From the NCBI GenBank assembly GCA_021613535.1, contig CP075492.1, positions 4,836,001 to 4,900,000 of the forward strand: a DNA stretch of 64,000 nt. The letters run 5' to 3'. The stretch comes from Adineta vaga (lineage: Eukaryota; Animalia; Rotifera). Of this stretch, positions 3,660-61,240 are shown piece after piece. The notes below the pieces were generated by a model. The model saw nothing but the letters and a program-made list of their open reading frames with translations, was not told where the DNA came from and did not search any database. Position numbers and translations under genes: made by a program. Positions within the stretch are counted from its first letter, which is position 1. Each line of letters begins with the position of its first letter.

Positions 3660-3667
3660 TATAAATA
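3660..3667 (+). promoter_or_regulatory. Candidate TATA box of the M23 gene
   Basis: TATAAATA about 40 nt upstream of ATG 3705; AATAAA at 4195-4200 follows the stop. Confidence 0.45.
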
Positions 3668-3704
3668 TCCAATCTGCACGTTTTTATGCATAACATCAAA
3701 TCAC

Positions 3705-4148
3705 ATGATGACTAAACTGTTCTTCGTTTCACTTCTTGCACTTTGTGCAGTCGTCGTCGTCGCTCATTTACCTATTCCAAGTAAACCAGTTACCACTCCA
3801 TTTGGTAAAAAAGGTAGTTGGGCAGCTGGCTATCATACCGGTGATGATTATGCTTGTCCCGTTGGAACAAGTGTTCGTGCTACAGCTAGCGGTACAGTCA
3901 TCAATGCAAATTGGGGTGCTGACTACGGTACACATGTTGTTGTTGAATCTCCTGATAAAATTCGTCAACTCTATGCACATTTAAGTAAGAAATCAGTCAG
4001 TGCTGGACAAAAGGTTTCAGCTGGACAAGAAATTGGAAAAAGTGGAAATACAGGACGATCAACTGGTCCACATCTTCACTACGAAGAACGAGTTTCTCCA
4101 TATGCATATAGAAATCATCGAAAACCACAATTAAACAAGGCACATTAG
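3705..4148 (+). CDS. Secreted M23-family (lysostaphin-type) zinc peptidoglycan endopeptidase, bacterial-type
   Basis: Signal peptide; HTGDD (HxxxD), YAHLS and GPHLHYE (HxH) Zn motifs; intronless. Confidence 0.93.
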   Translation: MMTKLFFVSLLALCAVVVVAHLPIPSKPVTTPFGKKGSWAAGYHTGDDYACPVGTSVRATASGTVINANWGADYGTHVVVESPDKIRQLYAHLSKKSVSAGQKVSAGQEIGKSGNTGRSTGPHLHYEERVSPYAYRNHRKPQLNKAH

Positions 4149-18834: not shown

Positions 18835-21800
18835 TCAAGTCTTACATGTATTCAATGTGATAGATGCTGTGTTAGAAAGTGTATTAATTGCAATCAAGTC
18901 GAGTCGTGTGTCGTTGTTAAAGTCACCTGCTAATAGAAAACTAGGATCACTGTCAGTTGTAATACTATCGATAGTGTCAAAGCTTCCATCACCATTACCA
19001 AGAAATAGACTCACAGTATTGTCAACATAATTGCTCACTGCTAAATCCGCAATACGTATCATTATTCAAATCATATGATATAATAGAATATGGACTGCTA
19101 CCAACAGAATAATTTCTAGAAACAGTAAAGGTTCCATCTACGTTCCCCAATAAAATACTAATACTGTCACTATTTTTATTGGCAATAGCTAGATCCAAAT
19201 AGTTATCAGTGTTGAAATAATTTGCCGTTATGAATGTTGGATAGGCACCAACTTTATAAGTCTGTTTCGCTGTGAATGTTGTATTACTTGAACCTAACCA
19301 TATAGTGATGGAACTGTTATCTCGATTAGCTACAATGAGATCTGGTATTTTATCTTGATTGAAATCGTTGGAAAGTAAAGCAGATGGTGAGCCTCCCACT
19401 GAGAAGTCCATAAAACGAGTAAAATATCCATTTCCTTTGCCTAATAATATAGTAACACTACTACCGGCTGTATTAGCTGTTGCAAGATCAAGAATATTAT
19501 CATTATTGAAATCTTTGGTTAAGATAAAATCAGGTTGAGTACCAGTTCGATACACTCGTGGTCCTTGGAAGATTCTATTTGCACTACCATATACCACGCC
19601 TACGGTTTTGGCATCTCTATTAACGATAGCAAGATCAGTTCTGTTGTCATTATTGAAATCATTTGCTATGATAGAATTAGGTGATTGACCAGTGGCATAT
19701 TCAGAATGAGTTTGAAAAGTACCATTTCCTAAGCCTATCAAAAAAGTGAATACATCATCGTCAAAATTGGTAACGACTAAATCAAGTTTTCCATCATAGT
19801 TGAAATCACCAGATGTAACAGATGTTGGAGAATTTCCAACTGGAAACAATAGTTGAGGTTTAAAAGAACCATTTGTATCGCTAAGTAAGATGCTAATCGT
19901 ATTATCACCATTATTAACAACAACCAAATCTTGATGACTATCATTGTTGAAATCGTTCGATGCAAGAAAATATGGGCGTGCACCAACTGTATAATTGACT
20001 ACATTCCGAAAAGAACCACTTCCATCACCAAACAAGATACTTATCGTTTTGTTCGCACGATTAGCCACAGCTAAATCTAAGTTGCTATCGGCATTGAAAT
20101 AATTTGATATTATGGAAGAAGGTTCATAACCAACAGTATATGGAATTGGTGGTATCTGAAATGTTCCATCACGATTACCAAGAAGAATACTAATGAAATT
20201 ACTGTCGCAACTTGTTACTGCTAGATCTAATTGTTTATCGTTATTGAAATCTTTCGATGTAATTGAGCAAGGACTAAACTCAATTGCATAAGGTTGGGAA
20301 ATGTTAAATGGCTCAGGAGGACGATTGAATGATACAAGAATTGAATTACTCTCTCGAATGGTTACTGCTACATCCGTAAAATTATCGTTATCAAAATCAC
20401 CTGTAACTAACGACGAAGGATTGAACCCAAGAGAATAGGAGAGTTTTTGTCCAAAAATTCCATTTTTCGTTCCTGGAAACATAGAAATACTTGCGGCACC
20501 AGCATTAGTCACCATAAGATCGAGATATGTATCATTATTGAAATAGCCTGATACGATAGATCGAGGAGAAGCATCAGTTTGATAAAATGCTAATTTAGAA
20601 GATGTTCCATTACCGAGACCCAGCAGAATACTAACAAGGCTGTTTCCATAATTTGTGACCGCGATATCTAATATTGTGTCGTTATTAAAATCAGCTGATA
20701 TGATAGAGGTTGGCCGAGTTCCAACTGGATATCTTGGATATGAAGGAAATGTTCCATTTGCAGTACCAAAAAGCAGATTAATCGAGTTACCACCATTGTT
20801 GACAACAATAAGATCTATGAAATTATCAGAATTGCATAGGCCTGCCACAACAGAGATTGGAAATTCACCAACATTATACGTAACGTCTGGCGCGAAAGTT
20901 CCATTTCCAAAATTAATCAGCATGCTAATTGTACCTTCGATATAGTTGACAACGGCTAGATCGGTACTATTATCATTGTTAAGATCTTTGGACACAATAT
21001 GATATGGACCAGTGCCAACATTATATTTTGTTTGATTTTGAAACGTACCATTTGTCATACCAAAAAATACACTAACAGTATTATCACCATAATTAGGTAC
21101 TGCAACATCCATGTAATTATCGTGATTGAAATCACCAGCTGTAATGGCATTAGCAGAAAAACCAGCAAAATAGTTTGCTATTAACCAAAAAGATCCATTT
21201 CCATAGCCATATAAGAAACTCACGATGCCATACAAACTATTCACTGCTACTAAATCTATATGTGTATCATTGTTGAAATCATATGCCACCAAACCTACGA
21301 AATTTTCATAGGCAGGAATATTTAATTGTATGCCAAACGATCCGTTTCCAGAGCCAATTAATATACGTATGAAAGGTTCTTCGGATTGGACCACTGCCAA
21401 ATCAATTATTGTATCATTATTGAAATCAGCAGAAACGACCGCTGTTGGTGTGGCTCCAACAAGAGTTATTTCCTGTTCGTGGAAAGTTCCAAATCCATAC
21501 CCAAGTAATACGCTAATTGAATTACTATCTTGATTAACAACTGCTAAATCTGGTATAGTGTCAGAATTAAAATAATCTGCTATTATATAGACTGGATTTG
21601 AACCAACCGAATAAGCTGTTGATCGTTGAAATGTTCCATCGCCAGTACTAAGCATCACTTCGATAACACCATCTTGTTGACTACATATTACTAGATCGTT
21701 CTTTTTATCGTTGTTTAAATCATAGAGTAGTGCATAACTGGGTTGAGTTCTTGTCAGAATAGTGGCTTGAGTTTCAAAATTTCCCTTTCCATCGTTTAGC

Positions 21801-23389
21801 AAGAGAACTGCATCACTGTCTTGTTGATTCAACACCATGACATCCAAGTCTTTGTCATTATCAAAATCACCTAATGTTGCAGAGATAGGACTACGGCCAA
21901 CAACAAATGATTTTTTGCCGCTTGTAAAAGGTGTTTTACATCGTTGTACTATAAAAGAAAACAAATACACAATCAAAGCTGACTAAACATATCGATCTTT
22001 ACATAGAGCTCAGATACGTACTTCCATTATTATTGTTATTTGCTCTAGATTTTATTCCTAAAACAACACCAGTAATAACACCTACAATCGCCAAGGTTAC
22101 CAATAAACAAACTGGAATAGAATATTTTTTCTTATAATACCAAGGTTTTCTAATAAATATAATAAATGAGAAACGCAATATAACGTAAAAAGACCTACTT
22201 GAGCTTTGGAAACACATGTGCACCTATAAGTAGAGACAATAAATAAGATTGTGATGAAAAATGAAATGATATCAACGATATAGATATGTATACCTTCAAA
22301 TGGTGGTTGAAGTAGAGCTTCTTCAGGAATAACTTGTTTCAAATGAACAATATGAAGTTGAGGTGCTGGACTAAAGAGTGATTGAACTATCATATGTGTA
22401 CCAGGAAGAAGAAGAAGTTCATCTTCTGTAACGAAATGCGAATGTGCACGAACTGTTCGACCATTGATTGCTTCAACTGAAAATAAAGTTCGACTTCCAC
22501 TATTACCCAAATACATATTATTTTCCAATACAGTTAATTCTGTCGTACAAGATGAAAATGCCCACCAAGTGACAGGTGTTCCAGGTGGAAATTCTTGACT
22601 CAAATCTTTCGTCACACCTCGCCAAACAGTTAATGGTGGAACACATGGTAATTTGACAAGAGCAGTGATGAATAATTTCATATATTTGAAATAAGGTCGA
22701 AGTTTTTCACGAGGTTGAGTTTTAAGAGTATAATTAAGCATGGAATAAAGACTTCGATGTGGTTTATCCCATTCGATCGTATATAAACGAATAGCAGCAC
22801 TTTCATCAACAGTAAGATTATCAGGTGGTTCTGGAGGTGTTTCTTGTAGTGCGAGTTCGACATAGAATGTTAGATTATGTAGTATATCATCGAGAGGAGC
22901 ACAGGCTTCAGCAAGTGGTAAGATGGGTTCATCAGCATATTCGATGAGAGGTTCTGTTGGTTCGATTTCTTCCGAAGTAGTATTAGTAGCTGTCTGATTT
23001 TGTTGTTTAAGATCATCCGGTTCTATCGTTCTTTCACCTTCATTCCTCAACTCGCTAATCGTATTGTCTCTACCTTGTGTTAGTGATGTTTCTGTGCCAA
23101 ATTCATTTTCAGTAAGTTTATCTTTATCATTGAAATTTTGATATGGTATATTTGCTGTATACGGTGGATCATTAATGATCTTGATTGATGTCCTCTTAGG
23201 ATTTCGATGATACTGCATTGCTTCATTCCCAACGCCAATAGATGTTAATTCCGTTTGTATGCGAACATTTTTGCTAGGGGGTGCTCGTTGATATTGTCTA
23301 AGTTCATAACTAAGTGGGATAGCTGTTTGTTGAGTTTGTATACGAGCATTTTTCATCATAACTCTTTCCTTCTGTTCTTGATAATTCAT
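18835..23389 (-). CDS. Type II membrane protein: cytoplasmic R-S-E ADP-ribosyltransferase, TM helix, 21 extracellular FG-GAP/VCBS repeats (1-nt frameshift at ~19054)
   Basis: Exons 23389-22294, 22223-22199, 22149-22022, 21948-18835; ART motifs TVWRGV, WAFSSCT, EDELLL; TM IPVCLLVTLAIVGVITGVVLGI; 21 DFNNDxxxDL-type repeats counted. Confidence 0.9.
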
Positions 23390-24444
23390 CGTGTTCTTGT
23401 AGTTTTATCGATGAGTATTATTGATTTTCACGAGATCTAAAAGAAATCCGCTATTGATTATAATACATGGTTATCTAATCGTTCTGTACGATATTCATTG
23501 TTCTATTAGAAGAATATCAAATATGTAATGATACATGACACGAGTTATACTCAGAGAACATTATCTACTTGAAACGATTATGCGTATCAAGAGATGATGA
23601 AATATCGATGATGTAAAAGTTAAAAGTAGATATTTTCCTGTGAAAAACTACATTATGAATTCGTCATCGATCAGTGTTAACATTCATGCCGATGTATATA
23701 ATATATAATATGTGTTGATGAAGAAATTAGTACTTTCACATAACTAAGAGATGTTTTCTTATCATCATCGAGAGGAACAAATAATGAATGTATATGTATG
23801 AAAAAAGAAGTGCGTACGTACCGGCGAATATCGATGGTGAAATGAATCGATACCTGTATTCAGTAGTAAATAATGAAAATAAACTGAAAGGTTACATCGA
23901 ACTAACATAAATGCACAGTTTTGTATATGTTCTTTCTTTACATTTGACGAGCAGCCATGCATAGAAATATTTTGTTTATTTGCGTAGAATATATAATATG
24001 AAATCAAAAAAAAAAGAAAAACAATTTGTTATTCATATCGTTGATAGATGATATATATACGCCATACCCGTCAATGAGTTGGAACGCACGCTTTTTTTTC
24101 TTATTCAAAATATTTACCATAACGAAGTCATTTACAGATAAGAAATATAATTACTAATTTATTTATTCAGTCTACAGCAATTGATAAAATATCTATCGTC
24201 CTTTCATATGTAAACAGAATAAGCAGAAAATATAAAGGTGTAATTATCTATACAGGTAGTCAGAATTTGAAGTAAAAGTATAGAGAGCAAAACGACATCT
24301 GACACAAATCGAAAATTGGAACGAGATAGATTGAGGGTGGTGACCATTTCAGTTGATATATTCTGATATTTATTGAAATTGAGAACATAAAATATATATT
24401 CTTTTTTTCAAAGACATGGAAAATATAAATTCACAATTTTTTTT

Positions 24445-24771
24445 CTAAATAATCATAATTATTGAATGAGATCTTATAATTACGTCAAAATCAGTAAGAA
24501 TATTTAAATCAGTTAATTTATAGAAGTTAATATCATCTTTTTCAAAAATTTCCATTATTTGCATTTCTAATAAACGAGACGCATTACAATCAATACGATA
24601 CGAACTCATTGATGTAACATTAGGAAAGTAATATGAAAGTTCTTGATTTAGTTTTCTATTGGCAATACTTAAAATAGTTACATTATCATAATTCATTAAC
24701 GTAGAACAATCCATTTCAGTAGTTGATTCCATGATGAATATTTCCAAAATATATGGTACGGTATAGATCAC
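24445..24771 (-). pseudogene. Possible remnant of a divergent F-box/LRR-like family gene
   Basis: IYTVPY and YFPNVTS recall the C-terminal part of such rotifer proteins; no intact gene model found. Confidence 0.25.
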
Positions 24772-25135
24772 TAATACGTCATTTGATATTGAATATCAAG
24801 AATTCATTGTGAAACTCTTCAAATCTTATATCAACAAGTCTAGACTCCGTATTTATGTAGCAGAATTTAAATTTCAAGAAGTTTAAATGAATTAACAATG
24901 TAGTTTGTTAGTCCTTCCTATGATTTAGTACACATAGAATCGGTCAAATAATCCATTTGTCAACTTTGATGTTTGCCTGAACAAACAATCCAGTACATGG
25001 AGAGAACCAATACATGGGACGATATCCAAGTGTTTAAGATGGAGAGTAAGATTAGAAGAAATAGTATCATAATTTATAGAATTTCGTCACTTATCGTAGA
25101 ATTCTACTTTTAAATATTTGAGATCAGGTATATAT

Positions 25136-25235
25136 CTCAGTCGTACCTGAGTCGTACTTCAGTCGTACCAGTCGTACCTCAGTCGTACCTCAATCGTACT
25201 TTATTCGCACTTTATTCGCACTTTATTCGTACTTT
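25136..25235. repeat. 11-bp minisatellite, about 9 units
   Basis: CTCAGTCGTAC units grading into TTTATTCGCAC units. Confidence 0.85.
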
Positions 25236-25835
25236 AACTTACCTCGAATACTACCTGAGAATTTGCCAAGATGCATGTTTGTTTGATAAATGTAATGAGT
25301 AGAATTGAGATATTCAAAACATTCAATGAATATTTCATTTGGTAATGATTTTCTTTTCTGTCATTCATATTGTCAATAGTTTTCTTTTTCTATAACTTAT
25401 TTCACATCTCATATTTTAAGGTAGATTTTCATGTGTAAATCTTGGGAATATTTGTTCATTTATCGATTCATAAGTAACTTCTGACTGAATATATATTGAA
25501 ATAACGTTTGAAAGCTTATATAATTTAATACGTTAAAAGTTTGCTATGATCGTCGGTAGATTTATATATTTCAATCAAAATATTGTTGATTCGGTCATTA
25601 TGTTTTTCCTTTCTTTGAATAACATATATCAAAATCAATTTTTAACGGTATGACGTCAAGTAATGTTTGTTATCATTGGAATAGTAATACATACGATTGG
25701 TTAAATGCAATATCGATAATATATTGTAATGGAAGTTATGTCACTAAATATAACTTTATACTTATTCAATAGAATCTATTACAAAAATAAAAATCGTATA
25801 TATCTCAAAGTTTTTGATAATGCATTTATTTATTT

Positions 25836-26469
25836 CTATAACGTTCGTATACTATCACTACAATGTGCATCTAAAACTGGAACAGCACGTGATGTAAAGT
25901 CCCAAATTTGAAGTAGAAATAATATTTCTATTAGAATGTAGTTGCCACTAGTTAACATCAATCCTGAACGCCATGTAGCATATGATCCGTAGTTGATATG
26001 ACGTGCGAATGAAAACAATCCTTGGGCATAATTACGTCCTTTATTAGCCGGATTGTCTTTGAAACGTTTTTGTTGAGGTTCAGAAATAAATTCTGTGGAT
26101 ATTCCTGCAAGAAACAGACCAACACCGATACATCGACTTGTAATGGAAGGATAAAAATAGAAACTGGACAGAGTTGCTAAAGAATTATACACGGTACTAG
26201 AAGTTGGTGCAATAACAGCAATAGAAAGATCGATTTTCTCTTGCATAATATAACACACATTAATAATTTGTTTGATAGCAGCAACAGAACTCATAAAGAG
26301 GATGAGTTGTTGATGTTAATTTAGAAACAATTTGTTGCCCGTACATAGTTAGTAATGAATATTGAATGTATGGATCGAGTGAACGAAGCAAAGCATAGAT
26401 TGTTCGATTAATTGGTGAGAAACCTTTATTTGAACGATTGAAAACATCACGTGGTATTTTACTACACAT
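25836..26469 (-). pseudogene. Frameshifted DUF1295 / steroid 5-alpha-reductase-like membrane protein, fungal-type
   Basis: SE.QQKRFKDNPANKG..Y..GLFSFARHINYG.Y..WR.G motif; N-terminal LRSLDPYIQY lies in another frame (shift near 26295); the expected C-terminus is missing. Confidence 0.75.
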
Positions 26470-26766
26470 GTTTTTATCGACATCAACAGATGAGAGTTTG
26501 AAATGTTTGTCTAAAAAACTTTGTTGCTTTATTATTCACTGTAAAGCATTGGTTCGGGATCAATCACTAAATACAAGACATTGAGTTTGCTATATCTATT
26601 TTTTGATTATTTGACAACTTATACAAAAACATTATGAAATAATTTCGAATTTATTAATAAAAATATATGTTATTCATAACGACAGTATGACAGAGGTCTT
26701 CAGTTAACATTCTAAATATGAATGCAGATGAAACATCTGATAAAATCGTGAGATGTTTTTCTTTTA

Positions 26767-29700
26767 TTAATGAATAGAATCCTTCAACAAAATCTCATTA
26801 TTGTCCAATACTAATGGTTCGTGAGAAAAGAAAACCGACGTAATGTTCCGCCGTGATTTTCGATTACATTCGTCTTGTACTCCATTCCAAAGAAATTTTA
26901 ATGGAGTGTTCGATTCGGGACGAGTTTCTAACGCTTTTCGTGGTTGAACATTGCTGGAAAAAGGAGAAGGAGTAAATATAGCTGTTATATTAACCTTCAG
27001 CCGTGCTCCCGATGCTTTCATCGATCGTCGTTTGTAGTCCTGACAAAATTTCTCGAATGAATTTTTGTTCTGCTCCATACGTTTGGAAAACTCTGCTTTG
27101 TATTCTTGTAGTTGCTCTTTCGAATAGGAACAGCGAGATGAATATTGTTTCTTATTCTTCTTTTTCTTTTGATGATCTTCTTCAGAATCGTCATCCTTGC
27201 TTTTCTTTTGATAATTTTCTTTGGAATCTTTATCTTTTTTCTTCATGTCAATTCCAGAGATGAAAACAGCATCAGAATGGATTGATTCATCATGTTTCAT
27301 TGTTTCTTCCTTCTTAATTGTTTTTCTCAATTTCGATTCGTTATCAGTAGAAGTTTTTCGACTACTATTTGGTGATAAATCAACCATTGGAGAATATGAT
27401 CCAACATCTGCTGATAGATAAGTTTTTTGTACGACGATATCAAGAATTGGAAATGGTGCATCGTTAATATCACCTGTATATGTAAATGGAGGAATATTCT
27501 TTTTGGTCGGGTTGAGCATTATTCTATTAATCCATTGCTTTAACAATAATACGTCAGTGTCGCAGATTTGGAAAAGAGTGACGACTTTTTGTTCATGATC
27601 GAAATCGGTAGTATGACCTAAAGTATTACGAGATATAGATACGACTTTCTCGATTGTAACAAAGGAAAAAATCAATTGACTATATCAAGGAATTGGACAA
27701 ATCTTTCATTACAAATCTTTTCTTACGTGAGTTATTATTATCAGGCATAGCAACACTCTTTTTGTCGTCGTCTTTTTCCTTATCAAGATATTCTCTATCT
27801 TTAATCATATTATGAACTTGTTTGATAAGAATTTGTCTCTCGTCATCTTTAATTCTTCCACTCTTCGAATTGATCAATTTCTTCACTAGTTCATCATAAA
27901 TCAATTTGCGTTGTTTTGATGTTAGGAGAAAATGCAATTGAACAGAGTCTCCTTTCCACTGGGTTGATTTTAACGACGAAGTAGAACTACATTTGATATT
28001 CTGGAACTAAAAAAAAGGAATGAATGATTAAGTGACAATGATCAGATATTCAAAAGTAGTGACTTACAATTTTCAACAATAATTTATCGAATTGTAAATT
28101 GAAATTATCTTGCGATCCAAAGAATGGTAAACAAATCTGCTGTTCAGTTATTTTCCGCAATAATCTGATTGGTTGACAGTATTCTACTTTGATCGGAATG
28201 ATATTTTTCTGTTTTTCATAAGCATATTTAGCTTCCTCTATACAATTTCGATCGTTGAAATAATTCGTACTCAAACATAGAATGAACAAATCCGATCGAT
28301 CAATTTTTGGAAAGCTGTTTTCGGACGAATCTGATCTCATCCAAACGAAAAACCCTTCATTTGTTAGACATGTTCGTAATTGTTGACAGATAGCAGCATC
28401 ATCTATAGCATAACTCAACACTATTTTGAAACTGTTTGGAATACTTTTCAATGCATTTTGATCTATAGATAACCGCATTTGCACTAAGGCATCAGTGAGT
28501 TCATATTTTTGATAAGCTTGATTCACATTAGCAATAGGCCCAAATAAAACAAGCTGTTGTTGATCATTTAGTTGTGGTAGAACCGATATTTCACGACAAT
28601 ATGAATAGAATCCATTGATTACATCTTGATTCCATTCATTGCACTTGCTGGACAACACTTGTCTACACATTGATCTTTCGAAATAGTGTTTGATTTTCTT
28701 GTCGCATTGCGTAAGGTGTTTCTTGTTTGTTGCAGTAAGAGTAATCGTTGCAACTATAGTAAGAACAAGCTCTCGACCTTATAGAAATGAATTGCTATCT
28801 TACTTGACGTTGGGCAATAGAAATTTCCGTAAGTTCTATCGTTGGTTTGAAGAGTTTGAACAATATCAATAAACTGCTTGTATAACTTTTGTTGATCTGC
28901 TAAGAAAATAAATGATACATTGAGTAAGATAGTTGTTGTTTGTCGAATTTGTTCGATAGTTTCATCAACCATCTCTTCTGCAATGATTTGATCGTGTTGA
29001 CATGAATCTGGCATTGCAATTGCAATGGATAACGTTTGACGATCGGATCGTCTTTCATTTTTGAGCACATATTGAATGATCTTAGATATAAAGAATCGAA
29101 CTGATTCGCTTAGAAAATCTTCATCGGCTAATTTTCCTGGCATTGACCAATTGACAAATAGCATTTTCTTGCAATTCAATCTTCCAGCTGTTGTCTCAGT
29201 AATAAATGGCATTGAATTGTCATGATGAGTTCTCGTATGTTTTGATCGTTGTTCTTCAAGATCACCTGCTCGTTCGATTAAATATTCTTTCAATCCTGAC
29301 GACAATGATGGAATTATGATAATGTCAACCTATAGAATTAGCATTAGAAATAAGAAACTTAGTAGAAAAAAATGGGCTTACTTGTTGCTCAGCGATGTCT
29401 CCAGAAGAAACAGCAATAGATCCATTGGATAACTTGGCTTCGCAAGAAAAAAATGGTAGAGAATTAGGTGAATTCATCATGAGCGGAACAAGTGCAAGAT
29501 CATCTTTTTGTTTGCATAGAATTGGAAAAGGTTTATATTTTCTCGTGAGTTTAAATTTACAATAACAATGATTATCTTTAGCTAGATGTTGTATGTAAGA
29601 AATTGTTTTCTCAGCAATATTATAATAAAATTCAGTTGTATCAATGGTAAGTTTTTTGAAACTTGATAGTAAAGTTTTCAGTTTTAATTGAACATCATTT

Positions 29701-31376
29701 AAGAGATATTGTGGCGCATGAAATTCCTGTTTTTTCAAATCGATTTTGACACCGTCTTTACGCAAGTTATTTTCAATTTTTCCCACTGCTTTCCAACCAA
29801 TCTGGATCAAACAATCGATCTAAATAGATAATACCATGTAAGTCCATCAATGCAATTAAAACTATCCGAATGTGTCATGTATTTTTAAAAGAGAAACTTA
29901 TCGATAAATTGAAACTTACTTGTGTTGATGAAAGTTGAGTGAATTTATATTTGTATAATCGATATTTTTTGAATAAATGTTCAATTTTTGTTAACAATGG
30001 ATTGACCACATTTTTATGTCCAAGTATATCAATAATAGTTTGATCGCTCTTTCTAGTGGATATGTTTTCAGTAATCGATATAAATGAACTATTTCGTTGT
30101 TGAGACTGGATGATTTCATCGAATTCCTTTCGATATTGATTTACAGCATAGATTTTCTCCTTCTGAATAATTTGACATGTATCTAGATCCATATATTCAA
30201 CTAAAAGAAATTCATCCGTCACAGAAATGAATAATTTCTCCTGCACAATCTGATGTTCAATAATATTATCAATTTCAATAGCTTGATGAGAATTATTGAA
30301 TTTATCATCATTGAAATGGACGATTTCTAACGTTGGTGCAGATGTCTCATACTAAAAGATAAGTTCTTACTAGAACATAATGTCACAATTATACCGTTGC
30401 TTTTGGCAGTGTATTTGATCGACATATTATGAACATATGACTATCACGATCGATGATTTTTTGTATAATGCCAACAGCTGATGTATTGGAAAACCATTGT
30501 TTTACTGAAATACAAAGTATAGATGACAAATAATGCCTGTTTGCTCTTTCTACCTTTTCGTTGTTTGTATTTGCGAATTTGTACTTTTTTAAATAACTTT
30601 TCGATAAAATTTATAATCGTCTGATATTGTTTTTCTGTACCAGTCAGTTTGAGAGTATACTTTAGTGAAGACCACTCATCATCAGATGTTGTCTGATCAA
30701 TCTCAATCCGAATAGGACCTCTTTCTCTATCGACATAGTCAATAAAATATGAACGAAACTTTTGATTTTGAAGAAATTGAACAAGATTATCGTCATCGAT
30801 AGTATATTTGTACTGACGTTTGACAGTTACTAAATCATCTGTCTTAGTTTTCGTCGAATTATTTGTTTCGTGATGTCTTTTCTAGAAGAGATTAACAATT
30901 TGAGTGTATGAATATCGATCAAATGATTACAAAACAGTAATACTTACATGTAGGTTACTAGGATTCTCAGATCTTGATCGTCGTTTGTGATGATTACTAA
31001 CGATTTCTGATGAAATTCTAGCACGGTCATCCGCGTATTGTGACGATATACTCGAATTTACGTCAACTTCTTCAACAAGGACTCTTCTCAAATCGATGAG
31101 TTTTTCTCGAAATCGACTTTGAGTTCCAATCGTAGGTTTTCGAATCGTCCCATCATCCTGTAACTCAGAGAGTACCTTTGCAATATCTTCATCGTTCAAT
31201 GCTACCAGAGCATTACCGTCGATGTTTAATTCTATAAAGTTCAGTTATAATAAAGATTAAAAGACAAAGTTAACATAATTAAAAAACATAGATTTACTTT
31301 TAAACCTTTTAATATATCTCTTAAATCCATTCGCTTTCAGCCAATGACTAACTTGGTCTACATTCCACTTTGTCAT
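26767..31376 (-). CDS. Multi-exon SAM - KH-like - Macro - TIR - unknown C-terminal domain protein (gene C)
   Basis: SAM: MTKWNVDQVSHWLKANGFKRYI...NIDGNALVALNDEDI; Macro: SIAVSSGDIAEQQVDIIII...TTAGRLNCKKMLFVNW...SIAIAMP; TIR: IVLSY...SDLFILCLSTNYFNDRNCIEEAKYA...IIPIKV; the exon joins I checked are in frame. KH-like call is inference. Confidence 0.85.
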
Positions 31377-32689
31377 GATTGATCACGTAAAATAAACCTT
31401 TGGAGCAATCTGAAATCGACGAAATCTCACGACTATCTTAGAGTTTTTGCGAACGAGGTTAAGTAAATGCAACTGCACATATAGCTATGTGTCAATTCCA
31501 CATCTGCATTCTCACCCAACTACAACTTCATGATTTATTTACATTTATGACGCCAATACTTACAACCAACAATTATTCTACAAACATATCTCCGAAATGT
31601 TTTTTCCAACTTACCCATGTTTGATGTTTTTCTGTTCTAACGTACCTGGCATTGTTGATTGACGATTATTATTCCTTTCTTTTTTTTGGTGGATCAAAAA
31701 TAAAAAGTTTGTATGTTTGACTGCAACCAACACATTCTCACTACTGCGTAATACATTATTAGTGACTTATTTTATCCGGATAAATCAGCTATGTTCTTGT
31801 GTGAATTTCAGTTCTCGTCAATCTCCATAGATCTTATCGGCAACTCACATTTTCTCCTTCTATTTTTTAATGTTTGTACAGACATGAAAACCCTCAGAAT
31901 CAACTCTAGATTGAAAACTTTATTGATAAAGCAACCGGTATGTTATTGTGTTATTGTGTTATTGCTTATTTATTAGGATTCACTATAAAAATAATTGATG
32001 TGCTCATGGAGTAACTTAACTATATAAATCTGGAAAACAATCATTTGATAAGAATATTTTATTCTTCAATTTCTTTTTAGAACATATAAATGAACTATTG
32101 ATCAACAGAAATATAACACTTACTTGATCAGTTAAAGGTGACTATACTTTCTTTTCTATTATTTATTTCGCGAGCAAATGCTTATGAGAGGCAAAAATTT
32201 CTTCTTTTCTCTTTTAAAACATTTTTTTCACGACTTTCTGTTGCAAGATTTATTCAGAGAAAAGGAAATGTAAATAGTTATAAAATGAAGAAAAATACAT
32301 ATTCGTATGTAAATATTTTTATGTTTCAGAGTAACAGCGACGAGTATTACGCACAATAAATCAGTGGTTTTATTAGCATGACTCTTTCACAATATAATCC
32401 ATAGATTTTTGTAAGTCTAGACGTTATAAAAGAAATGGAATAACATACAGAACGACTGACTCTTCTGTCAAATTCTTTATACATTCTTCCTTACTTTTTA
32501 AGGATCTGAATACTATCGTTTCTAAGGGCCTTGTCGAGTCCATTTCGAGGAAACTTCAGACTAGTGAAATTAGTCAGAAATATCTGATCGAAGAGCAATG
32601 TGATTATTGACATAGAATAAATTTTTCATCTGTGTTTGCCTTCACATAGTTATAGTCTGATCAATGTTGTTCATAATCCCAGATATCAT

Positions 32690-32717
32690 TCTTCTTCTTC
32701 TTATTATTATTATTATT
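32690..32717. repeat. (TTC)n(TTA)n trinucleotide microsatellite just before an AG acceptor
   Basis: TTCTTCTTCTTCTTATTATTATTATTATTCAG, ending 8 nt before ATG 32729. Confidence 0.7.
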
Positions 32718-32728
32718 CAGATTTATCA

Positions 32729-35700
32729 ATGGCAAATTGGACTTTGAAACAAATCATTGAATGGTTGCAAATAAATGGTTTTGAAAAGCATATACAAACG
32801 TTTATAGGTAAGCAATTGATTCATTGAATGTGTGTGCTGCAAGTATATGCATGATCTTTTATGCCATAGATGAAGATATTGATGGAGCAGCACTCATGGG
32901 TTTACGCGACGATGATATTATAAAACTACTTGCTGTGGTGGATCAAAAAGGAGTACGAACAAATCCGACGATGAGAACACTACGAAAGTTTTTGGCCAAA
33001 CTAGAAGAATTGAAGATATTGGGGAACAAAGAACAAAAGAGAGAAAGAAGACGCAGCGGGTAAGTGAATTTATTCTGTCCAAAAGTTTTTCAGACTGTGA
33101 TATTCTAGTGCACTTCATTCATCCATGATGACTGTTAAGCCTATTGGTCATACAGTTAATGATTCAAAATCACATTCTCAAATATTTATTGTTCAACCGA
33201 GAAGCTCGCAAATTAAATTTTTCCAAAGTGAATTGATCTGTAACTATTTACAGGAGTATTTATCGACAAATTTTGATGTGACATGCAACATACCTATGAC
33301 AATTCTGTCCATATCAAATACTGACTTGTTAGTACGATTGTCCGGTCATAAACAAGAGGTGCAAGCTGCTCATCAAAATCTTCAATCATTATTTGCTACA
33401 TTACATACCACAATTTTGAATGAAAACAATGCGAGTCCAAAAGGTTAGTAGTTCATTGTATATAGAAGAAAAACAATAAATACATTTCGTTTAATAATAT
33501 CTCTTTAGTAATCAAATGGTCAAAGAACATCCATTGTGACTTAGCTCTTCTTGTACTTCAGAAAATCTTTATTGATAAGAAGTTATGCACTGTTTGGGAG
33601 AAAACAAGTGTGTTGTCTGGATACTATATTGTTCATTATCTAACTGGTAATCATGATCCCAGTGCCTCGGAAGAATTTATCAACCATGTATTAAATCATG
33701 ATATATCCTTCGTCAAAGATATCACTGTATCGAATGCTCACAAAAGATACCATAGCGAATTGGATGAATTTATCCAAAACAAGAAGAATGCTTCACAACA
33801 AAATCAATCCATGGCTGTAATTTCCTTACAATATCCGTCTCAAAAGGACTTCAAAATTAGTCTTTTTGGTTTGAAAGATATTGTTCAAGTTACAAAAAAA
33901 CAATTAAAATTACTAATCAATAAACATCAGATGAAAACGACAAAACTCAATCTGGATTCAAAACAGGTAAGAACTGCATATTCTCTAGATGTCATCTCGA
34001 TAAATAATATTGTTTTAATTTTAGCGTGAATATCTATTGGACAATTGTACCTCTCATTTGAGAAATATTGAATTGAATTATGAAGATGATAATGTTAAAA
34101 TTCAAATTCGTGAAAGTTTATTTACTTCACCTCAATATCTCGTAAAAATAATTGAACAGCTGATTCTATCGATGATTTTCCAAACAGTGAATTTAACTTT
34201 CAAATCGATCGAAAATGCATTTCTATTGACAGACAGTGATCGTTTACAATTAGAAACTCTTGCTAAAAACTGCAATTGTGAAATAAACCACATCGAAGTA
34301 AAAACAGAAGAAGAATCTATCATAATACCTAAAGGAAACATTCCTGCAACACCTGAACATCTCGCAAAAGACTCAAATCAAGTTTCTGCTACATTATTTG
34401 TGCCAAAATAGTATCTATATCGAACAACACACTAGAAATTCGAAAGACTGATCAATTAAAGGTTTGCTTTTTCTACTAAACCATTACATTCCACGAGGGA
34501 TTTCATTTGATTGATTTTAGACTGATATCATAGTACTATCAACAGAAGATGATTGCATTCGAGAGAAAATTGAATCTAAGAATCAAGTTGGATATTATCA
34601 AACCAATACTGGTAAAAATTTTCTTTATATACCATGGTCACCAACACAATTCAAACAATATGACGATCGACCAAAATCTATTCTAAAAGAATCAATAAAA
34701 CAGTTCATATCTCACTCATTAACACAATTAATTCAACATAGTGATGCGAATGTAAAAACAGTGGCATATTCAACAACGAAATGGGAGAATTATCCACATC
34801 GACAACAATTTATCCAAATATTTATTCGCCAAATGAAATTACAATTGGAATCTGAACTGTTTGCGAATCGTGGCTGGAGAATTATACTTCCTTTCCATCA
34901 AAAACAATGTTTCTTATTTAAAATGTTTTCAGACATCCTATCAAAATCAAAAACTCAAAATAATAGTGATGAACAATTCTCATGTCCAATATCGAGTAAG
35001 TATAGAGATAAAGGCATCGTTTGTTTTATGTCTATTCGTTGCTTTCTAGTAAACACACTTGCACTAAAAACCTCGAGCGATAATAATATTGTCAAATGCC
35101 AAAAAGTCATCAGCAATTATATCGAGACAAATGTTTTCATAACAGTGAAAATTGATAAACCATTTGATTTACATATTTGGAATCAATTTATGATTAACGA
35201 TTATTACAATTACTGTTTACAAGAAATGATCTTACCCAATTTCTTTCAAACAAACTCACAACCGCAGTATCTGGAACTAGCTGGTCCAGTAAAAAAAGTT
35301 CATATAGCAAAAGAAAAGTATGAACTAATGTCTCAAATTGCTCATCTGAAAAGAATACCTGCAAATCTCGTACCTATCAAAGATCATCAATCGTCGAAAG
35401 TTACGCTGAAAACATCCAAAGAAATATCAAATCAATACAATATTCTCATAAGTTATTGCTCTTTAGATGGAACATTGCCTCTGATTCTTGCTGATCATTT
35501 TACTGATGAAGATTATATTGTATTAACTGAAGCTTCCGATCAAACATCTTCGTCTCATATTGCAAGCATAAATAGAGCAGATGTTATTGTCATTTGCTTT
35601 AGTTCAAATTATTTCATGAATGCGAATTGTAGAACTTCACTACGAACAGCAATCGAATCCTCGCAGAAAACAATCATACCTGTTGTTCTTCTAGCAAATT

Positions 35701-37248
35701 CATCAGATCAACCGATCAATTGGCTTGAATGGATTGATGTACAAGAATTATATTATGAAATATTTCACGAAGAAATTAAATTTAAACTTAACACAAATTT
35801 TGATCTTAATTATGAAAGATTATTAATTGAATTGGTAAGCTGAGCAGTTTCTTAAGTATTCATTATTATAGGATAAGAATTGAAAGGCAGCATTATTTTC
35901 ATTTCCACAGATTCGCACTCATTCTCTTTACTAATTAGAGCTTTCTATTTATAGCTTCAATATACTAAACCAGGTGTATTTGGTCATAAATATCCAAAAT
36001 CTAGTAATACTTCCGTCGAAGAATCTACGCAAAATGAAGATGCTCATCATCACGATAAAACTATCGAATTAACAGCAGTAGAAATGCAAACGAAAAGACG
36101 AATCTATGAAGAGCGTATTCAGAAAATTGTTCAAAGCCAAAAAATTTCAGAAAAGGAAATGAAACAACTGATTCGTAGTTTAGAAGTTGTATTGAAATCA
36201 TCGTCAAGTCAAGAAAGTTCAGATACATCGGAAGAAGAAAATTCAATAATATCCAGTGAAATTTCTGAACAGTCTGAAAATAATATGAACGAAAGAAATA
36301 AACAAGGTCAGTAATTAAAATTCCATTATGAGAGAAAAATATTATAGATATCATGAAGACAGATGACAAGAAGATGATAGATTTTTATGAGTTAGATACT
36401 TTAGAAAAAATGGTAGAAGTATCCTGAGTGCTTTATATGAACTTCTCAGATGTATTTATCGTAGTGTTTTATTGTATTTGTTTTCAGAAGAATTAAACAT
36501 TTGTTCTGAGTACTTGCATGCTTTCTTCTTATTGATACAACGTTGGATGGAAGAAGCATCAAATAAAACAATGATTCGGGGTAATTTACCACCATTTACT
36601 TTGTCTGGAGATTATAATGATGCTATATTTCCACTCCCATTATCGAATAAACTTCCCTGGTGGGACGTAGAAGATAGTATTCAGAATATTTATCGCTCAA
36701 AATTAAAAGAACTTGAGCTATTTCCAGAAGTGAAAATGATTGGAGGATGGTTTAATTGTGATGAAGCACATTTTTACTTTGAAAAATTAATTGATCCTGA
36801 TATGCAATTTCGAGAAGAAAGGAAAGATATAGATGAAACAACATCTGATGAAGGAAAAAACAACATAATATCTAGAACTTATATGAAATTTAATACGTCC
36901 GTACAGAGACATATCTCAGTTTGGGATCGTGATCAAGATGTCGAACTCTTAAAAGAATACAGAAGACGTTTAAATAACTCGAAAACGGATTTACCTGACG
37001 ATCTTCTAGAAAGATGGGATCATTATTGGTCTACAAACGCACAGCTTATACGAGATATGGTATGGGGAAAAGTTGAAGCTCAATCAAGATCTAGAGAAGA
37101 ATGTCGAAAACTTGAAATGCTGGATGATCCAAACAATGAACTGTGGAAAAAGAAAAAAAGAAACCGTGGATGTCGAAAATTTGTTAAACAGAAAATACGA
37201 AATACGATTGAATGGCAAAAATTCTTAGACGTACAAAAAGATGACTAA
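32729..37248 (+). CDS. Divergent paralog SAM - KH-like - degenerate Macro - TIR(E to S) - unknown C-terminal domain (gene D), apparent frameshift at ~34408
   Basis: SAM: MANWTLKQIIEWLQINGFEKHIQTF...DIDGAALMGLRDDDI; TIR: ILISYC...INRADVIVICFSSNYFMNANCRTSL...IIPVVL; shares NLPPFT.SGD.NDA.FP with gene C; junctions at 36.3-36.5 kb not resolved. Confidence 0.8.
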
Positions 37249-37386
37249 AAACAAGTTAATCAAGTTGACCATTGTATCTCGAATATTCTTTTTTCAATAA
37301 ATTGCCAATTCTACTTCTATAATTGTATAACTTTGATTCCACATTCTTATAAGACATTTCTATTTTTAGATAAATCAATTCTTTAC

Positions 37387-39776
37387 ATGACTGCTTTACT
37401 TCAAACATCTAAAAATGGTTCAATTACAGGTTTACTCGAACTATTCGATGATGTTGTTTCATTTCTCGATAATAATACTTACGAATCAACGCTTGGCTTA
37501 CACAAACTAACCGCTATTTGTAATAAATTCATTGGCATTCATGCCTTGGATCTATTTGATAATCCACTAATTATGAAACATAGACTTTTCTTCTTACTCA
37601 GTCGAACATTCAGCATGTTGTTATCAAAAATGATATTGGTTCCATTGACATCGGTCGATCAGGAATGTTTAGATGCAATTAGCTCATTTGTTGCTAATCT
37701 GTGTTTGTACAAGAATAAAACCATTGATTGTTTCTATACAGGTTTTAACGAAGAACTTAATCCAGAATCATATGAACAAATCTTTTTTACTAAACATTTC
37801 ATAGACAAATTTATTCGAATGGTAGAACATGATATTTCCGTCCATGATTATCCATCACCATATGATATTAAATACAAAATAACTGATCGTTTACTTCGTC
37901 TCTGGATGAAATTACAACATATGAATTACAAATGTATTCTTGATGCAGTAGTTAATTGTTTGATGTCGAGTAGTTATCTGAATGCATATGAAAGTATTGA
38001 TCTTCATAATCCAATATTAACCCCAAAACAATCATTATTTCTGTATCAATGTCCGAAATTTATTCGTCTGATGTCTTATGAACGGCAGGAAGCTATATCA
38101 CATATATTATGTGAAAAGATTTTAAGCGATACCAATGTCATACTTCGAAAGTACTTACCTGTTATTTTAGGACGTGAATCAAAACTAGTGCGAGAGACTA
38201 ATAAGAAGCCAAAAGAAAAAGTATTTACATGCATACCAGCTGGATTGTTTGACGATGAAAGAGGAGCAAAAATGCCTGCTATTGCTTGGAATATAGAATT
38301 ATTAAATTATTTTGCTTTGACATCAACAATAGCCATACGAAGTTGTTTTTATACAAGTATGTAATGATGTCAGTTAATCCTGATAAGAATAAAACAGATT
38401 TATATATTTTTTCGCTTAGATCATGATCGCAATGAGACAATGGTTGATCAAATGCTTGCTCTAATAAGTGAAGAATCTTTAATTAAAAGTGTTAAAGTAC
38501 ATGTTCTATCGTTCCATGCCGATGTTGCTCTTATGTCATATTCACTTGTACTGTTATATAATTTGGTATTTGACGAAACAATACATCGACATATAAAAGA
38601 CAAAAAACCATTTGATGCTCTCAAAGAACTTTATGTAGCGAAAGATAAAGTAATCCAATTTACATCACGCACATTAGCTGCAATTTTAAGAAAAGACAAA
38701 ATCGATAAAATTGATAATCCAGCGAAAATTGCAAAATCCTATTTATATTTGATCGAGAATACTCTTGAAGATCCATCATTGATATTTCATGGAATTAAAT
38801 TGGATGGAGTATTAACCAATTTGGAAAGTAAGTTATTATACACTTATATTTCATTATAGTAAGTATCATACGATAGTTGCGATATTTGAATGAGAAAACT
38901 TCAGTGGAGTGTATAAATAAACAGACCATTGTGACTAGAAAGAGTAACTTTGTTCCTTTTATTTTAGCTGTTGTTCAAAATGATGACGTGAAAGAAGAAA
39001 TTGTCAACGAAGATGGTATCAATTTGATAGGAGATATTGCATATCGTGAAGATCTAGATGAGAAAACCATACGTGATCCTACTATTCGAATTATTGAAGG
39101 TCTCTCGTTCGCAAAGGAAGGATATAAAAAAATTCTTGAAAATGAACGCTTATCAGCTTATTTGGATACATTGTTGCACGATAGAGATGCTGAGAAGAGA
39201 TCAATAGCAAAATATATCAATTGGAATGTTAAAGATCAGAATACTTTTATAAAAGACAAAACTTGCGAAACAGAATCTGGGCGAGCAGAAAACATACGAC
39301 CAAAAAACCTATTTGACATTAACAAAGCCATTTATCAATACGTTCCAGGTGATTACAAGTTTCGTTTGGATGATGAAAAAAGGTGGAAAAAAATCAATAT
39401 TCGAATTAGTTGTAGTCAACAAGATCAAAAGATATGCAATGATATTTACAATAAATTGATGGAATCCGACTTATACAACGTATCGTTCGATACATCCAAC
39501 TCACAACGTCCAGATCCTGAAGTACTGGCCAATGAAGTTGAACGTTCCTCTGTCGTTATTATATGTGCGTCAAATACATATCAAAATTCGTATCCATGCC
39601 GAATAGAAGCTGTTTATGCTAAGAAGAGAAATCGAAAAATTATTGCGGTTAAGTTCAATGACTATATTCCTTCAAAATGGTTAACTCGTATTATAGAAGA
39701 AGAACCTATTGTGTTTACACCCTCAAAATTTAATGAGGCATGGGCTCAATTACATGATACAATCAATAAAGAATAA
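37387..39776 (+). CDS. ARM-repeat-like solenoid + C-terminal TIR protein (gene E)
   Basis: Exons 37387-38356, 38420-38827, 38968-39776 in frame; helical ARM-like segments (LVLLYNLVF, VKEEIVNEDGINLI); TIR: IRISCSQQDQKIC...VERSSVVIICASNTYQNSYPCRIEAVYA...IIAVKF. Confidence 0.85.
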
Positions 39777-40029
39777 GAAAAATACTGAAACAGAACGCTA
39801 TAGTAGACGAAAAGATACCTTTTTTAAACTCTAACCTGCATTTGATAGTGACATTAACAATAAATATGTGATGCCGAAGCAATTCTTTTAATACACTATA
39901 ATTAGTTTTATCCTTACATATATCAATGTATCTTTTGTAGATAAAAATCTTTTTCAACCAACGGCGAATTCGTACAAAAGACAAAACAGTATTATTTGAT
40001 TAGAATATTTGTATCCTTCGAAGTATATC

Positions 40030-42090
40030 ATGGCTGAAAAAGAGAACACATTGAACAAAATGTCAACTCAAAATTCATCATCAGCGAAAATAGTTAAATG
40101 TAAACAAGAAATGACACAACAAAAAATTCTTGAAAATTGTATTGTCCTCTGGCTAGATGAAAATCTTGATTTTTCTACTGATCATAGTCAAAAATGGATT
40201 TCTCAACTTCGAAATATTGTCAATACCATCGAAACGTTTAATGATATCGATATATGTCTTGAATATTTAACTCAGCTCAAAGATGAGAAAATCTTCTTCA
40301 TTGTTTCCGCTTCTTTATTAAACCAAATTGCTGTTCTCGAAGACAAATTCATTCAACTCACTTCAATTTATGTGTTGTGTGACAATGCAGTAGCAACCAA
40401 TGATAATGTCAAAGCATTTAAAAAAGGAAAAGGTATCTTCACAACTATGAATCATCTTTGTAGCGAATTACAAAACGATGTTCGTCAAGTGGAGAAAAAT
40501 TTGACTTGCAGTACTACAATTTCGTCATCACCCAACTTAGATCCTAATGAACTTCCACCAACATTTATGTACTGTCATTTATTAAAAGAAAAATTCTTTA
40601 AACTTGAAGATGATCCCAATGCGAAAGACGAATATATCGAATATTGCAAACCACAGTATGAAAAGGATAAACATCAAAAATATTTAGCAGAACGTTTTCT
40701 GACGACGTATGATCGCGCATCTAAAACAGAATCACCTATTTGGTGGTATACAATGGAATGTTTCTTATATAAGATGCTCAATCATGCATTATGGACACTC
40801 GATATTGAGATTCTTATGAAAATGAGCTTCTATATTCGAGATCTTCACGAACAGATCAGTGAACGATATTCAAATCCAAAAGAAAAACATCCATCAGTTG
40901 TATATCGAGGACAAGAATTGTCGGAAGCAGATTTTAGGATGTTAAAGAAAGGCGATTTATTTGCATTCAATAATTTTCTTTCGACAACTATCGTTGAAGA
41001 AATAGCACGCAAATTTCTAAAGGGACCAAGCGGCGGACCTGATAGAGTTGGTATTCTATGGAAAATAGAAATTGATTCATCTGCTTCTTCCGTACCTTTT
41101 ACTGCAATCGAAGATATTACTGCTATGAAAAAAGAATTCGAAGTTCTTTTCTCCATTGGAGCGGTTTTTCGTATTGGTGACCTAGAGGAACGTGAAGATA
41201 ATGAAACTAATTTCTGGCAAGTTAAATTAACTTTAACAGATGGTCGTGATCCATCATTAAATCGTATAACTGATTGTATTCGAAGATCACTTGGTCCTGG
41301 AACTGGTTGGCGTCCATTGGCTCAACTAATGATCAAAATGAATCATTTTAGCAAAGCAAAAGAAATTTATGAGAAATTAAAGCCTGATGATAAGACTGGT
41401 GACAAAGTAGAATTAACTTTCTTTCATAATCAACTTGGTTATATTGAAAAACAAATGGGTCATTTAACTGAAGCTCTTGATCATTATCAAAAGGCTATTG
41501 ATTCTAGTAAAGAATGCATGTCTCCGAAAGATGCTCGCCTTTCCAGTGTATATTCGAATCTTGGTGCGATTCTGAAGAAGCTAAAGGATTTTGATGGAGC
41601 ATTAAAATATTTTGAACTTGTTCTGGAAATTGATCGTACTACAGCGGATCCCAATCGACTAGAAATTGCAATTGATTATAATAACATTGGCTCAATACTG
41701 GATGATCAAGGCAAATATTCTGAAGCTCTCAAGAATTATGAAAAAGCATTAGAGATTAAACTAGTTCATCTGCCCGCTCATCATCCATCTTTAGCCAATA
41801 ATTACAGTAACATTGGTGTAGTTCATCGTAAAATGGGTGATTGTTCGACAGCTTTGTCATACTATAAAAAGACTCTTACTATTCAAAACAAAAGTTTGCA
41901 ACCTAATCATTCTGCATTGATTGTTACACATAGTAACATGGCAACGGCATTGGAAAATCTTGGTAGGATTAACGAAGCGATTGAACATGCAAAAATGGCT
42001 GCTAACATTGCAAAGAATGCATTTGGAGAGAAACATTCTGAAACAAATAGACGGGCACAAATTTTACATGAACTTGAAAAAAGACGATAA
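40030..42090 (+). CDS. R-S-E ADP-ribosyltransferase + TPR protein (gene F), intronless
   Basis: VVYRGQ, NNFLSTT, EFEVLF catalytic motifs; PIWWYT..CFLYKMLN; about 42-aa kinesin-light-chain-type TPRs (YNNIG...QGKYSEALKNYEKALEI). Confidence 0.92.
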   Translation: MAEKENTLNKMSTQNSSSAKIVKCKQEMTQQKILENCIVLWLDENLDFSTDHSQKWISQLRNIVNTIETFNDIDICLEYLTQLKDEKIFFIVSASLLNQIAVLEDKFIQLTSIYVLCDNAVATNDNVKAFKKGKGIFTTMNHLCSELQNDVRQVEKNLTCSTTISSSPNLDPNELPPTFMYCHLLKEKFFKLEDDPNAKDEYIEYCKPQYEKDKHQKYLAERFLTTYDRASKTESPIWWYTMECFLYKMLNHALWTLDIEILMKMSFYIRDLHEQISERYSNPKEKHPSVVYRGQELSEADFRMLKKGDLFAFNNFLSTTIVEEIARKFLKGPSGGPDRVGILWKIEIDSSASSVPFTAIEDITAMKKEFEVLFSIGAVFRIGDLEEREDNETNFWQVKLTLTDGRDPSLNRITDCIRRSLGPGTGWRPLAQLMIKMNHFSKAKEIYEKLKPDDKTGDKVELTFFHNQLGYIEKQMGHLTEALDHYQKAIDSSKECMSPKDARLSSVYSNLGAILKKLKDFDGALKYFELVLEIDRTTADPNRLEIAIDYNNIGSILDDQGKYSEALKNYEKALEIKLVHLPAHHPSLANNYSNIGVVHRKMGDCSTALSYYKKTLTIQNKSLQPNHSALIVTHSNMATALENLGRINEAIEHAKMAANIAKNAFGEKHSETNRRAQILHELEKRR

Positions 42091-60871: not shown

Positions 60872-61240
60872 TACGATTGTAAACTAGTTACTGAAAAGAA
60901 AATCACATATACAAGGAGAATTAAAAAAAAAGAAAGAAAACGATGAGTCATCATCGAGTAATTTCATAACAACACGTCATATATTCTTTTCCTTTTCGAC
61001 TGCGAAGAGAACATATCTATGAACAACAATAACAACAACAAAATGTAGAATAGCATTATCTAAAGATTAAAATAAATATATCTGTTCGATATATCACTTC
61101 TTACGAGTACCTTTTCTTGTTAATCTTACCTAAATATCGATGTACATCTGTCGTTATGTTGATATATTCTTCTATAGCACTTGAGAAAGAACGAATAAGA
61201 ACTATTTCGATTTAGTCTGTATCTATTGAAATCAAATTCG

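Follow-up and report, generated by a model that had tools for sequence, protein, structure and literature searches.

A long-conserved block of TIR, macro-fold and ADP-ribosyltransferase genes in Adineta vaga, a candidate NAD+-based, immune-type module of bdelloid rotifers

We analyzed a 64-kb stretch of the genome of the bdelloid rotifer Adineta vaga (G000:C3:4836001-4900000, hereafter the window; the genome comprises 100.8 Mb in six contigs with ~31% G+C), in which five genes, designated G1 to G5, lie between position 18838, the end of G1, and position 42090, the end of the G5 stop codon. An earlier model-made reading of the letters (the sequence-only reading) had delimited the locus as 18835-42090, which fits both ends, and had seen in it a candidate immune circuit of two ADP-ribosyltransferases (ARTs), two Macro and three TIR domains. 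We found that four of these genes form a block with the organization G2(-)|G3(+)G4(+)G5(+), and comparison of gene orders argues that their linkage is non-random and long conserved. On balance, we consider it somewhat probable that G2-G5 constitute a conserved module, specific to bdelloids, whose four genes encode immune-type proteins that use NAD+, and that G1 only happens to be adjacent to it. In the literature on bdelloid TIR, ART or macro clusters we found no description of such a four-gene block.

The sequence-only reading had named synteny in other bdelloids and genome-wide ART/TIR/Macro co-location as checks on its cluster. As for the former, the G2-G5 block proved collinear in A. ricciae (two copies), R. 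sordida, three other Rotaria-type assemblies and two metagenome contigs, while the L029 assembly is collinear for G2, G3 and G4 only. Within A. vaga, a paralogous block located 608 kb away (C3:4.254-4.268 Mb) retains the same order, strands and spacing at 30–55% amino acid identity, and we also detected two partial copies, namely a mirrored G2/G3/G4 triad at C3:14.26 Mb and, on C1, a pair that has decayed. The head-to-head layout of G2 and G3 recurs in the copies designated regA, regB and regC, in A. ricciae, and in L029, L030 and L035. The two complete A. ricciae blocks (L025, L028) are arranged in tandem ~27 kb apart on contig CAJNOJ010000186.1; synonymous divergence (dS) between them is ~0.10 and the ratio of non-synonymous to synonymous divergence (omega) is 0.33, with G5 displaying an omega of 0.79 in the ART domain versus 0.12 in the TPRs. 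The genes flanking the block differ at every compared copy, and window open reading frames (ORFs) outside 25.8-42.1 kb had no match in the related loci except for peptidase M23, which is placed elsewhere. The block genes are 45–65% identical to those of A. ricciae, compared with 90% for the nearby peptidase gene.

In the tree of ART-TPR proteins, the block-linked members form one clade (SH-aLRT 100) composed of three sub-lineages, and regA of A. vaga clusters with the Rotaria sequences. The block duplication thus predates the Adineta/Rotaria split, with the linkage kept in each lineage. At the two ART-TPR loci that are the nearest outgroups, relatives of G2, G3 and G4 are absent. Six loci of the genome contain three or more TIR matches, and three of these loci are copies of the G2/G3/G4 triad. 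The sequence-only reading had cautioned that both families appear expanded, which is indeed the case: we counted 105 TIR_2 matches and at least 418 ART candidates, of which 150 were scored. A circular-shift permutation based on these 150 of at least 418 candidates placed a scored ART within 20 kb of 7 out of 73 TIR loci against 4.4 expected, which is not significant (p = 0.15). Since no genome-wide co-location of TIR and ART genes is seen, the linkage is specific to the G2-G5 block. Clustering beyond chance therefore holds for G2-G5, through conserved synteny, and not for G1.

The partial copies point to a further feature of the block. The G3-type partners at C3:14.26 Mb (L007:9260-9727) and on C1 (L011:5152-5916) carry in-frame stops, and the compared macro and TIR exons of the adjacent G2-type genes have none. 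Such a pattern is suggestive of turnover by birth and death, with the partner that lacks the TIR glutamate (see below) decaying first.

G3, G4 and G5 are transcribed, and G3 and G4 are spliced. Contigs of three runs of one study carry GT..AG joints, and are therefore RNA; they cover G3 and G4 in spliced form and the beginning of G5. The gaps between the mRNA contigs of G3, G4 and G5 measure ~50-100 bp and no listed contig bridges two genes. The G5 contigs begin at 39939-39955, a position not to be read as the 5' end of the transcript, just as contig depth is not comparable between genes. Introns in these genes are short. G2 and G3 diverge from a ~1.35-kb intergenic region (31377-32728, delimited by start codons read from the sequence) that is presumed to serve as a bidirectional promoter for both.

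G2 (26770-31376, minus strand) and its head-to-head paralog G3 (32729-37245, plus strand; introns 34996-35049, 35834-35953 and 36305-36485) were searched exon by exon as spliced models, with database entries serving as whole proteins: P0241 (the annotated G3 product of 1242 amino acids, with SAM and TIR_2), P0283 (partial G2) and P0302 (the A. ricciae orthologue of G2, 1312 amino acids). G2 encodes a SAM domain (30930-31376; Pfam SAM_1 E 7e-5, borderline), middle exons to which no domain is assigned, a divergent Macro domain recognized by profile and fold tests (28757-29329, together with the last part of the exon upstream), a linker, a TIR domain (28077-28424; Pfam TIR_2 E 1.4e-14) and a conserved C-terminal domain (26770-27684). 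The G3 counterparts are a SAM domain, again a borderline Pfam match (32729-33060), a degenerate Macro domain aligned by hhalign to that of G2 (34519-34995), a TIR domain (35442-35747; Pfam TIR_2 E 4e-9) and the conserved C-terminal domain (36486-37245), with unassigned exons in the middle and a linker before the TIR as in G2. SAM domains had been proposed for both Macro-TIR proteins and are present in both, the Pfam matches being stronger in orthologues than in the window genes. The C-terminal domain spans ~290 amino acids with the motif PPFT-x-x-GD-x-NDA-x-FP and has no match in Pfam, the PDB or the Atlas. A profile of the KH-like exons of G2 and G3 found nothing in the PDB; weak PARP14-KH Pfam matches occur in two paralogues only.

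The two Macro domains claimed by the sequence-only reading were borne out as folds. Pfam Macro matches 27 places genome-wide, none of them in the window or its exons. Yet, the G2 exon 28757-29329 matches genuine genomic Macro exons (E 1e-11 to 1e-7), a profile of 16 rotifer exons retrieves the second macro domain of PARP9 (E 1e-16), and a profile restricted to the G2 clade does so nearly over its full length (E 0.0015). The AlphaFold model of the G2 macro (confidence score pLDDT 75) has the second macro domains of PARP9/PARP14 as top Foldseek matches (prob 1.0, template modeling score, TM, ~0.6), and the G3-clade macro aligns to the G2-clade macro at 98.7% in hhalign. Both proteins are thus predicted to carry a divergent macro fold of the PARP9/PARP14 type. 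The first-strand N-terminal Asp is retained in the macro exons (D2 nearly invariant), but the Gly-rich phosphate loop (G-x-G after the central strand) is lost in both. The sequence at this place is AIGCG in the exons of rotifer macro-PARPs; the G2 clade has AMPDSC (in G2 itself), AVPDSC, AVSNLC or AVSDSC, and the G3 clade, in which the domain is more degenerate than in G2, has STTKWE (in G3) or STTNWE. Binding of ADP-ribose by these domains is accordingly doubtful.

The origin of this architecture can be approached through the closest relatives. The genomic Macro exons have PARP catalytic matches downstream, and the macro together with the ~100-residue linker of G2/G3 matches loci where the linker precedes a PARP domain. 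None of the 82 genomic matches to the PARP catalytic family PF00644 falls in the window; the position after the linker is taken by a TIR. It therefore seems that the Macro-TIR proteins derive from a macro-PARP whose output domain was swapped for a TIR. Searching with the G3 macro-TIR exon returned 102 matching proteins among 1.84 billion representatives, which means that the Macro-TIR family is narrow. Around ten Macro-PARP loci of the genome are the closest non-TIR relatives of G2 and G3. One such gene (L019, G000:C3:4927468-4929081), in which a PARP catalytic match comes after a tandem pair of Pfam Macro exons, lies 27–29 kb past the right end of the window.

Three TIR domains had been claimed for the locus, and TIR_2 indeed scores above the cut-off in G2, G3 and G4. 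We aligned 13 TIR sequences from paralogues and orthologues of the G2, G3 and G4 clades. The glutamate of a C-x-x-E motif, which we interpret as the catalytic residue known from TIR NADases, is kept in all four G2-clade and all five G4-clade members, while in the G3 clade it is replaced in 4/4 (S, A, V, V). In the clade profile this column falls on the Glu within WCWDEL of Cat1. The profile matches the TIRs of Cat1, MyD88, RPS4 (E 9e-5) and Roq1 and, weakly, C. elegans tir-1/SARM1; it was required for this purpose, as a single-sequence search of the PDB with the G2 TIR gave no TIR matches. We conclude that the TIRs of G2 and G4 keep the predicted NADase catalytic residue and that of G3 does not. 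A complex prediction for the G2 and G3 TIRs (score 0.17, mark 0.34) weighs neither way.

G4 (37387-39773, plus strand; introns 38357-38419 and 38828-38967) encodes a helical N-terminal region of ~500 amino acids followed by a TIR (39405-39674; Pfam TIR_2 E 7.4e-10) with the catalytic Glu. The N-terminal region had been read as ARM. Its matches to ARMC9_ARM (E 0.007-0.009) and Hsm3 (E 0.05) are weak, the former below cut-off, and profiles of exons 1 and 2 found nothing significant in the PDB, so that the ARM assignment was not confirmed. Of the proposal that SARM1 modules are split over separate genes, the SAM-TIR half is found on G2 and G3 and the ARM half is without significant support.

G5 (40030-42090, plus strand) is a single exon encoding an N-terminal domain (~40130-40510, residues ~35-160), an ART (~40740-41230) and a TPR array (~41290-42087; Pfam TPR_12 E 5.8e-41). 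The Pfam ADPrib_exo_Tox and ART matches of G5 fall just under the cut-off, and its homologues have Pfam ART. We aligned G5 to the arginine-ART Vis (E 6e-6), with YRG, STT and EFE standing opposite YRG, STS and EAE. G5 is thus predicted to be an ART of the arginine type that retains the whole R-S-ExE triad and is fused to TPRs. The N-terminal domain, examined with AlphaFold and Foldseek, is modeled as a five-stranded flavodoxin/receiver-like alpha/beta fold common to rotifer ART-TPR proteins; it belongs to no Pfam family and appears in the ESM Atlas in rotifer-only clusters. We rejected it as a candidate SLOG- or TIR-like signal sensor, the model being only generically flavodoxin/receiver-like (best E 5e-4).

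G1 (18838-23389, minus strand) encodes an N-terminal ART of the R-S-E type (~22397-22831; Pfam ART E 5.6e-6, above the cut-off) with the motifs VWRG, FSSCT and EDE (WRG, SSC and EDE of the R-S-E signature), then a transmembrane segment followed by an extended array of FG-GAP repeats (18838-21982; Pfam FG-GAP_3 E 2.9e-92). Together with G5 it makes up the two ARTs of the sequence-only reading, whose FG-GAP (G1) and TPR (G5) arrays were likewise recovered by Pfam. Yet, as a part of the circuit G1 had to be given up: no counterpart was found in any related locus, paralogous or orthologous, and its family is huge (more than 7400 database matches, best identity 38%). ART density is locally raised on C3, which makes the adjacency of G1 unremarkable. 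We thus regard G1 as a bystander beside the conserved block.

Between G1 and G2 lies a partial DUF1295 match (25839-26315, minus strand; Pfam E 2.3e-12), within a fragment that may extend over 25839-26535. Only relics had been supposed to separate the genes, and this fragment could be either a relic or an unannotated exon; in A. ricciae, too, a short match to it occurs downstream of the orthologue of G2, and it may represent a small unannotated gene rather than a relic. Pfam detected no further TIR, ART or Macro domains elsewhere in the window, whose remaining genes are unrelated (GPCR-like, LDLa/EGF, peptidase S9). The window ORF at 3630-4145 (plus strand) shows 90% protein identity to a Peptidase_M23 gene located a few kb from the A. 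ricciae block, and provides a yardstick against which the block genes are seen to diverge fast. Peptidase S9 is found near the block both in the window (61226-63259, plus strand) and on a block-bearing metagenome contig (L035:14486-19366), which hints at a wider regional synteny among Adineta-like genomes.

The block was compared with known systems that share its domains. With the vertebrate macro-PARPs PARP9 and PARP14 it shares the macro type, by profile and fold, and its paralogues give weak PARP14-KH Pfam hints; the nearest rotifer relatives of G2/G3 have the same Macro-linker order, followed by PARP. In the vertebrate macro-PARP cluster, PARP9 and DTX3L are arranged head-to-head with PARP14/15 adjacent, so that, as with G2/G3, a head-to-head pair sits in an NAD+-related cluster. 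In contrast to macro-PARPs, G2 and G3 have no PARP catalytic domain, carry a TIR after the linker and have gained SAM and the C-terminal domain; their macro phosphate loop is lost, and the linked transferase G5 is an R-S-E ART and not an H-Y-E PARP. SARM1 (ARM-SAM-SAM-TIR) resembles G2/G3 in combining SAM with a TIR that has Glu at the catalytic position. It differs in having two SAMs where G2 and G3 have one, in its ARM, which their chains do not carry, and in the macro-PARP-like middle of the latter, and the rotifer arrangement is spread over several genes and includes a partner without the Glu.

Bacterial Thoeris (TIR ThsB with ThsA bearing a SLOG or Macro sensor) likewise links a TIR, a macro fold and a second NAD+-using enzyme, and its compact same-strand arrangement is also seen here. 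However, the rotifer locus is eukaryotic, with spliced genes and separate mRNA contigs, Macro and TIR are on one chain, the block includes no SIR2 or transmembrane effector, and homology is limited to domain folds. Similar to G2/G3, the plant paired TIR-NLRs RRS1/RPS4 are head-to-head TIR paralogs of which only one has the catalytic Glu; the rotifer pair differs by having no NB-ARC or LRR and by its SAM and macro scaffold, and its division into sensor and executor would be our extrapolation. Among R-S-E ARTs (Vis, C3-like toxins, ecto-ARTs), G5 shares the R, STS and ExE elements with Vis, and G1 passes the Pfam ART cut-off. G5 differs from the known members as a cytosolic fusion of a flavodoxin-like N-terminal domain with TPRs of the kinesin light chain (KLC) type, and belongs to the rotifer expansion of at least 418 candidate loci. 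As the locus lacks a defining feature of each of macro-PARPs, SARM1, Thoeris and plant TIR pairs, it is a member of none of them.

Taken with their conserved linkage, the domains suggest that G2-G5 probably work as one NAD+-based, immune-type unit. G3 may act as a non-catalytic sensor or regulator partner of G2, in analogy to the division between RRS1 and RPS4. SAM and TIR contacts would drive assembly and switch on NAD+ cleavage by the TIR of G2 and/or G4, the output being NAD+ depletion or a nucleotide signal. The co-inherited ART-TPR protein G5 could either ADP-ribosylate a target, as a second output that depends on NAD+, or provide the sensing arm. Several points weigh against this interpretation. 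G5 has no match in L029 and is also missing from regB; a block copied as a unit retains its order even without functional coupling; the "immune" label is given because of domain types and fast divergence only; and, with the Gly-rich phosphate loop gone, the macro part of the NAD+/ADP-ribose logic may be vestigial.

Of the other explanations, the most serious, which we consider unlikely though by no means negligible, is linkage by descent only, i.e., independent fast-evolving receptor and effector families that were duplicated as a segment and never separated, with no joint mechanism. It draws on the great expansion of the ART and TIR families (at least 418 candidates and 105 matches, respectively), on the absence of general TIR/ART co-location, on the two copies missing G5 and on the fact that segmental duplication carries neighbors along regardless of function. 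It fits poorly with the rearrangement of the flanks in every species around an unrearranged block, with a linkage that outlived at least two ancient duplications and the genus split, with four genes intact in most copies, with the fixed active/dead asymmetry of the G2/G3 TIRs and with the unlinked state of the nearest outgroup ART-TPRs. The circuit of the sequence-only reading, in which ADP-ribose written by the ARTs of G1 and G5 is read by the G2/G3 Macro domains, SAM oligomerizes and the TIRs fire, seems improbable to us. The domain types required are all there, with intact ART triads, the macro fold and SAM, and type II Thoeris offers a precedent for a macro domain that reads a signal derived from ADP-ribose. 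Yet, G1 is not conserved with the block, and the Gly-rich loop is replaced in G2 (AMPDSC versus AIGCG) and more degenerate still in G3, so the case for writing followed by reading, though possible, suffers from the state of the macro loops and from the exclusion of G1. What stands of that interpretation is the conserved G2-G5 linkage, the intact G2, G4 and G5 residues and SAM; the roles given to G1 and ARM are not supported, and the lost macro loops and the missing Glu of G3 weaken it.

We hold as very improbable a non-defensive module, i.e., an endogenous NAD+-linked stress, cell-death or repair program (desiccation, DNA damage) comparable to that of SARM1, which acts in axon degeneration. 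The genes are expressed in RNA runs without known pathogen challenge, the scaffold relatives are macro-PARPs, and PARP-type genes feature in A. vaga stress-transcriptome papers. Nothing links the block itself to stress, however, and fast divergence, birth-and-death copies with pseudogenes and the raised omega of the ART domain are more typical of conflict genes. The conserved four-gene module remains our preferred reading. A bolder version of it, which we put forward as speculative and rather unlikely, would make the block the animal counterpart of a prokaryotic defense operon: a tightly packed, possibly co-transcribed cassette, built by a PARP-to-TIR swap on a macro-PARP, in which an active Macro-TIR and a further TIR enzyme are under the control of a Macro-TIR sensor that is itself catalytically dead, and an NAD+-derived product or NAD+ depletion is coupled to the arginine ART-TPR effector.

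Animals rarely have conserved clusters in which the genes are related in function but not paralogous, and bdelloid innate immunity is, to our knowledge, almost unstudied. The block described here joins the three main types of domain by which immune proteins consume or read NAD+ (TIR, ART and macro). It would represent a natural case in which a macro-PARP scaffold had its PARP output exchanged for a TIR, and an animal example of a fixed pair of active and dead TIRs. As a defined four-gene set, it may be directly tested for NAD+ depletion or nucleotide signaling in bdelloids.

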